A stretch of 63,599 nt of DNA, counting the filler, from Lenisia limosa (lineage: Eukaryota > Protista > Breviatea), in the NCBI GenBank assembly GCA_001655205.1. It is 11 parts of 11 records of this genome, joined end to end, with 100 filler letters (N's around TTAATTAATTAA, not from the genome) between each part and the next. Parts side by side here need not be neighbours in the genome. Positions count along the whole stretch, not along the records: positions 1 to 13,199 come from LPNZ01009110.1; 10 more parts are not named here. One strand, 5' to 3'. The position numbers and the translations under genes were made by a program. Shown piece after piece: positions 3,715-6,070 of the stretch (position 1 is the stretch's first letter; each line of letters begins with the position of its first letter). A model generated the notes under the pieces. The model was not told the origin of the DNA and made no database searches. It worked only from the letters and a program-made list of their open reading frames with translations.

Positions 3715-3995
3715 TACACGTGTTCTTGAGCATCTTCTTGTCAAAAATGGGGCAAGAACTCATTCCGGCCAGACCGTTAGACAAATTTTTCATCCGAACC
3801 TTTCACCAATATGCTCACGTGACCAACTGAACTGTATATCACCCCTACCCCAAATAGTGAGAACTAAGTAACTCAGAACCAACATCTGGAGTCTGTAGCC
3901 AGATTCATTGGAATCCCCGAAAACGGTACCCTTGAATTTTTTCAGGAAATTTTCCCCACTCCAGTTAACGGTAAGCCACAGGGAACTACTCACTC
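3715..3995 (-). CDS. Two or three spliced exons of an unidentified protein
   Basis: Exons ~3960-3871 (GENFLKKFKGTVFGDSNESGYRLQMLVL) and ~3826-3720 (IGHVSILVKGSDENLSNGLAGMSSCPIFDKKMLKN) join in phase across a GT-AG intron. Start and stop not found. Confidence 0.35.
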
Positions 3996-4029
3996 CGGGC
4001 AGTGTGACCTTTTATTACAGAGAGAGGCT

Positions 4030-5190
4030 AGCAAAAGTACTTAAACCATAGAGGAAACATGACCCTTGACAAAAAAGGGGCGCTCAAACCCAGGAGCGGG
4101 TCGTTGCGGGAAGTGTAGTCAGACACTTGATCTGAGAGCAAGGAGTTAGGCCTTAGGCTGACCATGGTTGGATGCTGGCAAACGGAGAGCAGGTGGCGGG
4201 GGGATTCTTGGTGTGGAGGAGATGGAGCTGGGCACAGAGGGTATTGTGGAGGATGGTGTCCGGGTGGACACCAACGTCTGGTGGGTAAGGAGCCAATGAG
4301 GATCCGGAGGCGCATCTTCTCCCGCTTCCATGTAGGAGTTCGCTTGCTTTCCAGGCCCTTCTTCATGTCAGGGGGTAAGGTGTGGTTGGCATAGCACTTC
4401 TCGTTCTTGATTGGGTGTGGGATGTGGTCCCTCATTAGGCTACACATAGATCTGAATCCGATTCTGAAGCTTTTGAAAGGATAAGAAATGTATATCGAAA
4501 AACATTCAGTTAACAAAAGATAAAAAAGATACATAGAAGAGTGGTGGCGGAGTGGACGGGGACGGAATGGAGGTGTGTTCACTTCTAGAGTGGTGCGGCG
4601 GGCGGACTTCTGGGCAGTGGGTGAGCAGACTAGAGGGGTGGCGGGATGGTGACTTCTTTTGTGATGACGGGCGCGGCGGGTGATCTGGGCACTTGGAGTG
4701 CAAACCCGTTACCTATCACATAATAATGTAATAGGGATGGTATTCAATTGCTGTAAATCGAAAAGGTGGAGGCTATAGGGTGGTTATGGTTGAGGTTGGA
4801 AGACGAAGGTGAGGTTAGTAGGTGCTGGCGAGGGCCCAGGGACCAAGGTGACGATGGAGTACATGGCGACGGACGGGCTTTCAGGGACCGCAACTGGTCT
4901 GCTGGGAGGGCCAGCCCCCTCCTCCAAGAGGTCACAGCGGGTTTTCCAGACCCGGAGTGAGTGGTCGAGGGCATTTGGCAGCTTGGCCAGTGCCTTGGAG
5001 TCGAGGAGGGATCTCATGTTCTCCTTGAGGCAAGGGCAGATTCCTGCTGCCAGGCCTCCTGTGACTGAAAAGGGGGGCTTTATTCCTGGACGAGGGTCTG
5101 GTGGTGGCAGGCGAGAAAGGCCAACAGGTGTCGTGGCAAGCCGAAATGGCTCTCGAAACATTCAAAGGCTCAAAGGCTCTTCTTAACAAA
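4030..5190 (-). mobile_element. Probable degenerate non-LTR retrotransposon (LINE) 3' fragments
   Basis: GC-rich stretch with long unspliced minus-strand frames. One reads KMRLRILIGSLPT...Q[Y]PLCPAPSPPHQESPRHLLSVC (4178-4243), a zf-RVT-like C-x2-C...H-x4-C with the first Cys as TAC, one change from TGC. Another reads ...LDHSLRVWKTRCDLL (W-x2-R-C motif typical of LINE C-termini). No RT or endonuclease domain is visible. Confidence 0.5.
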
Positions 5191-5241
5191 AAAACTAGGA
5201 TCGAATGTCAATCTTGATTAAAGGTTTTTGTAAATCCAACT

Positions 5242-5310
5242 GCCCGGTTAGCTCAGTTGGTAGAGCGTAGGACTCTTAATCCTACGGTCGTGGGTTNNNN
5301 NNNNNNGTCG
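5242..5310 (+). tRNA. tRNA-Lys (anticodon CTT), 3' half partly in an N gap
   Basis: GCCCGGTTAGCTCAGTTGGTAGAGCGTAGGACTCTTAATCCTACGGTCGTGGGTT: A-box/D-arm, anticodon stem TAGGA/TCCTA with loop CTCTTAA, start of B-box GGGTT. T8 run at 5311 is a plausible Pol III terminator. The acceptor 3' strand cannot be confirmed. Confidence 0.9.
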
Positions 5311-6070
5311 TTTTTTTTATGTTCTCCGTCCCTGTCTCATTTATTTATTGTGTGTGTGTAACTTGTATGTAACTGTGTTATGTGAGCAAGAAGACAGAAC
5401 ATAGTACAACAACGATCCAAGAGCTGCAAACGAGAGCGAGCACACACAGTTGCCGCAGATCTTCCCAGTTTTGAGCATTTTTATTATTATAGGGGTGAGG
5501 GTGGTAGATGACTCTATGCAATTGATGTGAATGAATTGAATTGGAGAATTGAGTTCTACCGAAGCCAGCCGAAGCCATGCATAACTTTTCAATCGGAACT
5601 TTCCAAATGGGGTAAGTTGCCTAAAGAAGTAAGTTTTTCTCTATTTGAATTGGTGTGTTTGTGTATTTGTTTTGCTTGCTTTTCGTTGTTGAAAACCTTA
5701 GTTTGTTTATCCAACAAGTGAATCTATCCAAAATAAAAGTTTATTTCAAGTAGCTTTCCTCTCTTCTTTTGTAAGCTCTATCCGATTTCTCTTCTGCAGG
5801 TCTAATTGCTTCCAGGAATTCCGCATTCAATTGCTCTGCACCAGTGTGTCACACTTCTCAGTCAATTTATTAGCGGTTTGTTTCACCCCCCTTTCTTGGG
5901 GCTTGAGGCAATTAATGGGTGTGTTACACACGTGTTGTTTTTGGTTATGACTTTCCGGCTGTTTCCACAGCAGCTTCATCTCAGCTCTGGGCGTTTTCTG
6001 GTTCTAATACTGTAAACCTGCTTCAGTTGTGATAAGTAGTTTTTTTTAGTTGTCACCCTTTCAGACAACG

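Follow-up and report, generated by a model that had tools for sequence, protein, structure and literature searches.

The GC-rich block that lies upstream of a tRNA-Lys gene in this stretch of Lenisia limosa DNA (63,599 nucleotides joined from 11 parts of the assembly, hereafter the window) is very probably the debris of a non-LTR (LINE-type) retrotransposon family, which integrates at the upstream edge of Pol III units, namely tRNA genes and dispersed 5S genes. As judged from sequence, the LINE identity is suggested by the pattern of truncation, by an ORF with an RNase-H-like and a zf-RVT-like part and by the dN/dS ratio, and not by a reverse transcriptase (RT). Targeting of Pol III genes is a textbook case of a safe harbour for mobile elements in a compact genome. 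A preliminary description of the window had proposed a LINE aimed at tRNA genes; the evidence given below supports this reading and extends it to 5S genes.

Two element fragments upstream of tRNA-Lys(CTT)

The high GC content noted in the preliminary description is real: it amounts to 51-55% over positions 4001-5000 of the window, against approximately 38% in the flanks and the contig, and the + strand has a strong excess of G. The two minus-strand motifs named there are also present. The finger motif, RLRILIGSLPTRRW...YPLC...ESPRHLLSVC (YPLCPAPSPPHQESPRHLLSVC), is encoded at nt 4172-4312 in a minus-strand ORF extending from 4028 to 4582, and VWKTRC at nt 4934-4951 within the minus-strand ORF 4784-5161. 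A Pfam search with five ORF pieces of the window yielded zero matches. The extent of the block had to be corrected. It had been drawn from 4030 to 5191, whereas a DNA search of the organism's own assembly detected repeat homology only for 4150-5154; positions 4030-4149 are single-copy and 5155-5187 are filler.

The matches of this search sort into three modules: A (4150-4441), B (4471-4833) and C (4820-5154), all on the minus strand. Module A is an internal fragment of an older copy and comprises a linker and the CCHC zf-RVT-like finger with its motif at 4172-4312. It is 5′-truncated at 4441/4442 and lacks its own 3′ part (joint, tail and UTR). At eight or more other loci, module A is 78-90% identical to that of the window; elsewhere it runs leftward into a 70-bp joint followed by module C, and rightward into an RNase-H-like region. 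Between the two fragments lies a 28-bp spacer (4442..4470) outside the repeat. Other copies diverge from the window on both sides of the spacer, which may be displaced old target DNA.

Module B is the 3′UTR of the tRNA-proximal copy. The 3′ terminus of the element is at 4471, where the minus strand ends with ...CCTTTCAAAAG. Module C is the C-terminal tail of the element ORF and contains VWKTRC. Its identity with module C elsewhere is 83-97%, and it is frameshifted relative to the paralogue at locus L004. Module C is 5′-truncated at 5154, where the homology of the window ends while other copies run on into the joint. The copies in the window, truncated and frameshifted, are dead.

Positions 5155..5187, between the truncated 5′ end and the native upstream DNA of the tRNA gene, are occupied by filler. 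It partly matches an internal stretch of the 3′UTR (AAACATTCA...TTAACAAAA) and, to judge from this match, may be the remnant of a third, tiny copy. The block had been said to stop 51-60 bp before the tRNA gene; this holds for the filler, which ends about 54 bp before it, and not for the repeat proper, which ends 87 bp before it.

The 9-bp direct repeat TTAACAAAA, for which a role as target-site duplication (TSD) had been considered, is not a TSD. Its first occurrence (4510-4518) lies 40 bp inside the 3′UTR common to all copies, and the second (5183-5191) belongs to a 35-nt stretch (5155-5191) matching the same UTR segment with a 17-nt insertion. By chance, seven families of 9-nt direct repeats occur in a 1.7-kb stretch. 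A search for TSDs at simple insertions found no clean or consistent duplication, and at one 5S site there was a 12-bp loss with no duplication.

The insertion target, the tRNA-Lys(CTT) gene on the + strand (5242..5310), had been recognized correctly. Elsewhere in the genome, seven intact 73-nt tRNA-Lys(CTT) paralogues match bases 5242-5296 without a difference, and a score of 26.6 bits (E=0.0084) was obtained for the D and anticodon arms. The 3′ part of the gene is hidden by an N gap (5297-5306), because of which neither ARAGORN nor the Rfam gathering run called the gene. The gap sits within the tRNA and leaves the retroelement untouched; about 17 nt are missing where 10 N are shown. It is followed by a G, a short trailer and a T8 terminator (5311-5318), which match the ends of the paralogues, so that the two sides are plausibly continuous, with a gap length about 7 nt too small. 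At 3985-4003 and 3822-3833, the window has short inverted matches of 9-15 nt to the tRNA-Lys gene (5′ end and D arm) and to module C. They are probably due to chance, and no RNA gene was called there.

A dispersed family with one fixed end

The block is multi-copy and not single-copy: within the 49-Mb assembly of the organism, the DNA search detected no fewer than 87 matches. This assembly is broken into 11,727 contigs with numerous N gaps, and several copies lie at the ends of contigs. At other loci the order of the parts, in the orientation of the window, is B, C, a conserved 70-bp joint, A and a further region, D. Read on the minus (coding) strand, the canonical element consists of the RNase-H-like region D, the linker and CCHC finger (A), the joint, the tail with VW(K/Q)TRC (C) and a 3′UTR of approximately 360 nt (B). 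In the copy at L004, finger and tail share one reading frame (minus-strand ORF 1562-2086). This is the longest copy, and it stops at the start of the RNase-H-like domain.

Because of this canonical order elsewhere, the window is read as holding two separate fragments: a 5′-truncated, gene-proximal B+C copy (4471-5154) and an older, distal internal fragment A (4150-4441). This explains why the finger and VWKTRC appear in "reversed" order in the window. Two truncated insertions had been postulated to account for that order, and the loci at which finger, 70-bp joint, VWxTRC tail and 3′UTR follow one another bear the proposal out.

The gene-distal end, which is the left boundary of module B, is at the same base in more than 30 copies (minus-strand read ...GTCCTTTCAAAA), and the flanks beyond it are unrelated. 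The gene-side ends vary, and the copies range in length from 83 bp to about 2.1 kb. Copy number drops toward the 5′ end: the UTR has at least 45 matches (45 with the first 170 bp of module B alone), and the RNase-H-like region D at most 10. Tiny 3′-end copies of 26-55 nt often stand stacked beside longer ones. The element itself has no terminal repeats (LTR or TIR), and its 3′ end is CAAAA only, a run of four A and not a poly(A) tail.

Insertion would take place by target-primed reverse transcription, with the first strand primed at the gene-distal nick. A first strand started there and copied incompletely would give rise to 5′-truncated copies facing the gene. Repeated hits at one site would push older copies outward and produce stacks; in the window, fragment A would be the older, outer copy and B+C the younger, inner one.

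LTR retrotransposons that choose such targets are well known (PMC5911963), and the pieces might accordingly be solo LTRs or fragments of a Ty3/DGLT-A-like element inserted upstream of Pol III genes by its integrase. The two ends of the copy at L004 carry a direct repeat of about 37 nt, and the genome contains a Ty3/gypsy RT fragment (on C10257). The 37-nt repeat, however, is the 3′ terminus of the element again, present as a separate tiny copy, and most copies have no such repeat on the gene side. A nested series of 5′ truncations with one fixed end is unlike solo LTRs, the ORF leads from the RNase-H-like part through the zinc finger and the tail directly to the terminal UTR with no integrase, and the orientation is strictly fixed at 34 of 34 loci. 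We consider this explanation quite unlikely.

Most copies consist of UTR or tail sequence alone, no RT is linked to them, and the B-C junction is of two kinds, one of which includes about 270 bp of Pro/Ser-rich sequence. These features would also suit a short non-autonomous element made of modules B and C, moved by an unrelated autonomous LINE that carries the targeting. Against this, the copies become gradually fewer from the UTR into the ORF, and eight or more loci have kept the junctions C-joint-A-RNase-H, which fits truncation of one long element. Nor was a fixed 5′ end seen, as would be expected of a SINE-like unit, and we hold a non-autonomous unit to be unlikely.

The Pro/Ser-rich sequence lies between B and C in many copies (L004 1233-1500, L020, L023, L024) and is missing from the window copy; from the sequences compared, the difference appears to reflect either two subfamilies or a deletion. 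At L039 (C11617), positions 1391-2220 are scrambled: part of the RNase-H region is inverted and a fragment of tRNA-Phe cut by an N gap is on the wrong side, which could result from rearrangement or misassembly. All copies are degenerate, and the family is either dead in this genome or incompletely assembled; full-length copies may have been lost in assembly gaps.

Pol III genes beside the copies

We examined 46 distinct loci of the repeat for neighbouring Pol III genes. At 24 of them a tRNA gene was found beside the truncated side: ARAGORN identified 21, the gap-broken tRNA-Lys of the window raised the count to 22, and Rfam added two. At 10 of the remaining loci Rfam identified a 5S rRNA gene in the same position. 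The adjoining tRNAs represent more than 20 anticodons. The geometry was uniform in 34/34: the repeat was upstream of the gene, in antisense orientation and with its ragged 5′ end on the gene side, and in no case downstream. The gap to the gene was mostly 47-95 bp, in a few cases 140-500 bp and in one case 1644 bp. Copies upstream of Pol III genes are often stacked. The position and orientation predicted for tRNA genes (upstream, antisense, 5′ side facing the gene) were thus found at every one of the 34 informative loci, with a gap of about 50-90 bp, and 5S rRNA genes, which had not been predicted, are targets as well.

Among control loci (other repeats and RT genes) none of 14 had a tRNA. The majority of the repeat loci with no Pol III gene run into an N gap or a contig end; at six loci with room on the expected side, some of them with N gaps, the gene was absent. 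Of the eight identical tRNA-Lys genes only one is occupied. At L088 an unoccupied 5S gene has undisturbed upstream sequence, which in the occupied paralogues is split at about -62/-49. The insertions at 5S genes lie at -49 to -62, native upstream DNA resumes at -49 to -61 of these genes, and beyond the far side of the insert the 5S paralogues share ...gtatagtcgtgaaatc...

These comparisons also bear on the notion that no mobile element is involved, and that the repeat is host sequence, or an artefact of assembly, duplicated along with Pol III genes in segmental duplications. The fragmentation of the assembly into 11,727 contigs with many N gaps, the copies at contig ends, and the fact that 5S and tRNA-Lys paralogues share upstream DNA of their own would be compatible with it. 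But the repeat adjoins more than 20 different tRNA species as well as 5S genes with unrelated far flanks, paralogous genes are found both with and without the insert, and the truncation point differs from locus to locus. Duplication of this kind is highly improbable.

The 5S rRNA genes observed (L003, L009, L021, L027, L079, L080, L084, L088, L096 and L098) are dispersed singles and do not form a tandem array. They have about 75 bp of upstream sequence in common (...gtatagtcgtgaaatccgcgaaaattttcgatatttc...).

The native target DNA of the window begins with the sequence AAAAAAACTAGGATCG (5188..5203, + strand), which extends from -54 to -39 of the tRNA gene. The corresponding strict motif was defined as four or more A, CT, 2-4 nt and AT[CT][GA], with the typical form AAAAAACT-N3-ATCG(G). 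It occurs at -51 to -39 in 15 of 37 tRNA and 5S genes, compared with a background of 0.01 per 120 nt, and many more of the 37 genes have a match to a loose version. The motif is common to the tRNA-Lys paralogues and was also seen at nine 5S loci and at L047, L028, L030, L026, L011 and L050. In this host it probably serves as an upstream promoter element of Pol III genes, and the element copies sit just outside it. The survey of insertions thereby maps a conserved upstream motif common to the tRNA and 5S genes of the host. A second upstream stretch, TTGTGCCC-N(1-3)-AAAAAATA, was noticed at about -70 to -55 at L083, L094, L029 and L053 (tRNA-Gly, Ile, Leu/Gln and Lys); this may be either a promoter motif or the terminus of a different element.

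Since the targets share only a short upstream promoter-like motif and the transcription machinery, a protein of the element that contacts the TFIIIB/TFIIIC/Pol III complex, and not DNA sequence, probably determines the insertion site. For TRE5-A of Dictyostelium, site recognition through the Pol III machinery was shown experimentally (PMC5911963, PMC3159450).

Coding capacity and known Pol III-targeted elements

Region D contains four acidic motifs of RNase H1 type in the usual order: FFTDGS (TDGS), ATEGL (TEGL), HCDN (CDN) and NNRADLLAK (RADLLAK). A subfamily with 57% amino-acid identity has kept the acidic motifs as well as the pattern and spacing of the CCHC finger (...NPRCPLC...ESLRHLLSVCEHP). 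A comparison of the two subfamilies over 221 codons gave a dN/dS of 0.23 (pS 0.69, pN 0.32), which speaks for evolution of the region as a genuine protein; as the sequences were aligned at the protein level, the value errs somewhat on the low side.

Profile and structure searches gave weaker signals. The L004 paralogue matches Pfam zf-RVT (PF13966) with 13.8 bits (E=0.095), compared with a gathering threshold of 27.5 bits. Neither RNase_H (PF00075) nor RVT_3 had an HMM match at these loci, a genome scan with PF00075 included, and phmmer searches of PDB sequences gave no match for the RNase-H-like region. The AlphaFold2 model of a 247-aa paralogue ORF, built on a five-row alignment, had a pLDDT of 33, too low for the model to be of use. 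The language-model Atlas places both ORFs nearest to clusters of RNase_H (PF00075), some of which include zf-RVT, with a score of 0.90, and to a zf-RVT cluster with a score of 0.91. These assignments, in which the nearest named RNase_H clusters are 71-98% RNase_H, serve as leads only. A phmmer search against 1.84 billion representatives and a word search retrieved only copies from the same genome.

No RT or endonuclease is joined to any copy; RVT_1 (PF00078) matches six places in the genome, none of which is linked to the repeat. Extension from the RNase-H region at the DNA and protein level found no longer copy.

The closest counterparts in organization are TRE5-A/B/C of Dictyostelium discoideum, non-LTR elements of the L1 clade whose insertions lie 40-54 bp upstream of tRNA genes and are transcribed in the opposite direction, with 5S genes used too; their copies are often 5′-truncated and stacked, ORF2 has a C-terminal zinc finger, and the 3′UTR module is long (PMC5911963, PMC5006619, PMC5391098). 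The family described here shares with TRE5 the upstream antisense insertion with the 5′ end toward the gene, the use of 5S genes, the truncated and stacked copies, a putative C-terminal finger and the long 3′UTR, with somewhat wider gaps (47-95 bp versus 40-54 bp). It differs in its RNase-H-like domain and its CAAAA end, whereas TRE5 elements have no RNase H and end in oligo(A). The phmmer search of the 1.84 billion representatives and the word search detected no sequence similarity to TRE5. With no homology to TRE ORF2 and with an RNase-H-like domain, the family is, by sequence comparison, evidently not a member of TRE5. The hosts differ as well. The HSP70 gene of the present host has at least eight short introns (40-100 nt), many short exons and CTAAC/CTGAC-like branch sites; its genes are intron-rich and its genome has approximately 38% GC, unlike D. 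discoideum.

NLTR-B of Polysphondylium pallidum is found 39-64 bp upstream of tRNA genes and has RNase H downstream of the RT (PMC5006619). The present family resembles NLTR-B, and NLTR-A of D. purpureum, in being a probable non-LTR element with an RNase-H-like domain, and NLTR-B also in its place upstream of tRNA genes. According to their descriptions, RNase H replaces the zinc finger in NLTR-A/B, whereas here both are apparently present, and this sets the family apart. Ty3 and Ty1 of yeast, DGLT-A and Tj1 likewise target the region upstream of tRNA and 5S genes, in their case through the Pol III machinery, but they have LTRs, an integrase and another integration chemistry, and form no series of 5′ truncations. 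Grem-LINE1 of Mucorales, an L1-type LINE, has a CCHC zf-RVT-like motif near the C-terminus of ORF2 (bioRxiv 10.1101/706580), as does the present family near its C-terminus; Grem-LINE1, unlike the latter, is pericentromeric and not tRNA-targeted, and no RNase H is reported for it. We class the elements as a new family of Pol III-targeted LINEs similar to TRE5 and NLTR-B, with no sequence relatives outside its own genome, the NLTR elements having been compared by description.

A 2018 review lists LINE-type elements targeting Pol III genes from dictyostelids only (PMC5911963), and the literature covered, which is incomplete, contained no LINE with this target choice from any other group. The elements could be the first such family from outside the dictyostelids, independent of TRE5 and NLTR, combining RNase H with a zf-RVT finger and docking on the Pol III initiation complex beside a host-specific motif (AAAAAACT-N3-ATCG); we offer this tentatively, at slightly less than an even chance. 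If true, convergent evolution would have one more example, a family of unrelated appearance that shows this geometry in a different host. Such a family would also provide a second system for studying how a target-primed element reads the TFIIIB/TFIIIC complex, a question that bears on the design of tools for site-specific gene insertion.

A related, AT-richer family is represented at L063 (C9656), where positions 590-1760 carry on one strand (+), in this order, an RT motif (TRGTPQGDSMSPVLF; RVT_1 E=0.017), an RNase-H-like stretch and IWTTRC. Neither this element nor any of the eight other fragments found of its family is near tRNA genes, and the RT piece is present in only one copy. The C9656 element is fused to an internal piece of module B and has no normal 3′ terminus.

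Other RT matches of the genome (a group II intron RT, two Lys/Glu-rich LINE fragments and a gypsy fragment) were considered as the RT of the element and rejected, as tblastx showed no relation. The Lys/Glu-rich LINE-like RT fragments are at L032 (C9306) and L033 (C11551) and the Ty3/gypsy fragment is at L034 (C10257), none near tRNA genes. Matches to COX1 and Chitin_synth_1 were not found in the 49-Mb assembly, which is incomplete; given the missing COX1, the mitochondrial genome seems to be absent from it, although in an incomplete assembly this is weak evidence. The group II intron-type RT, intact over 322 aa, is on a 1.1-kb contig (L031, C6086) and may represent bacterial or organellar DNA in the assembly.
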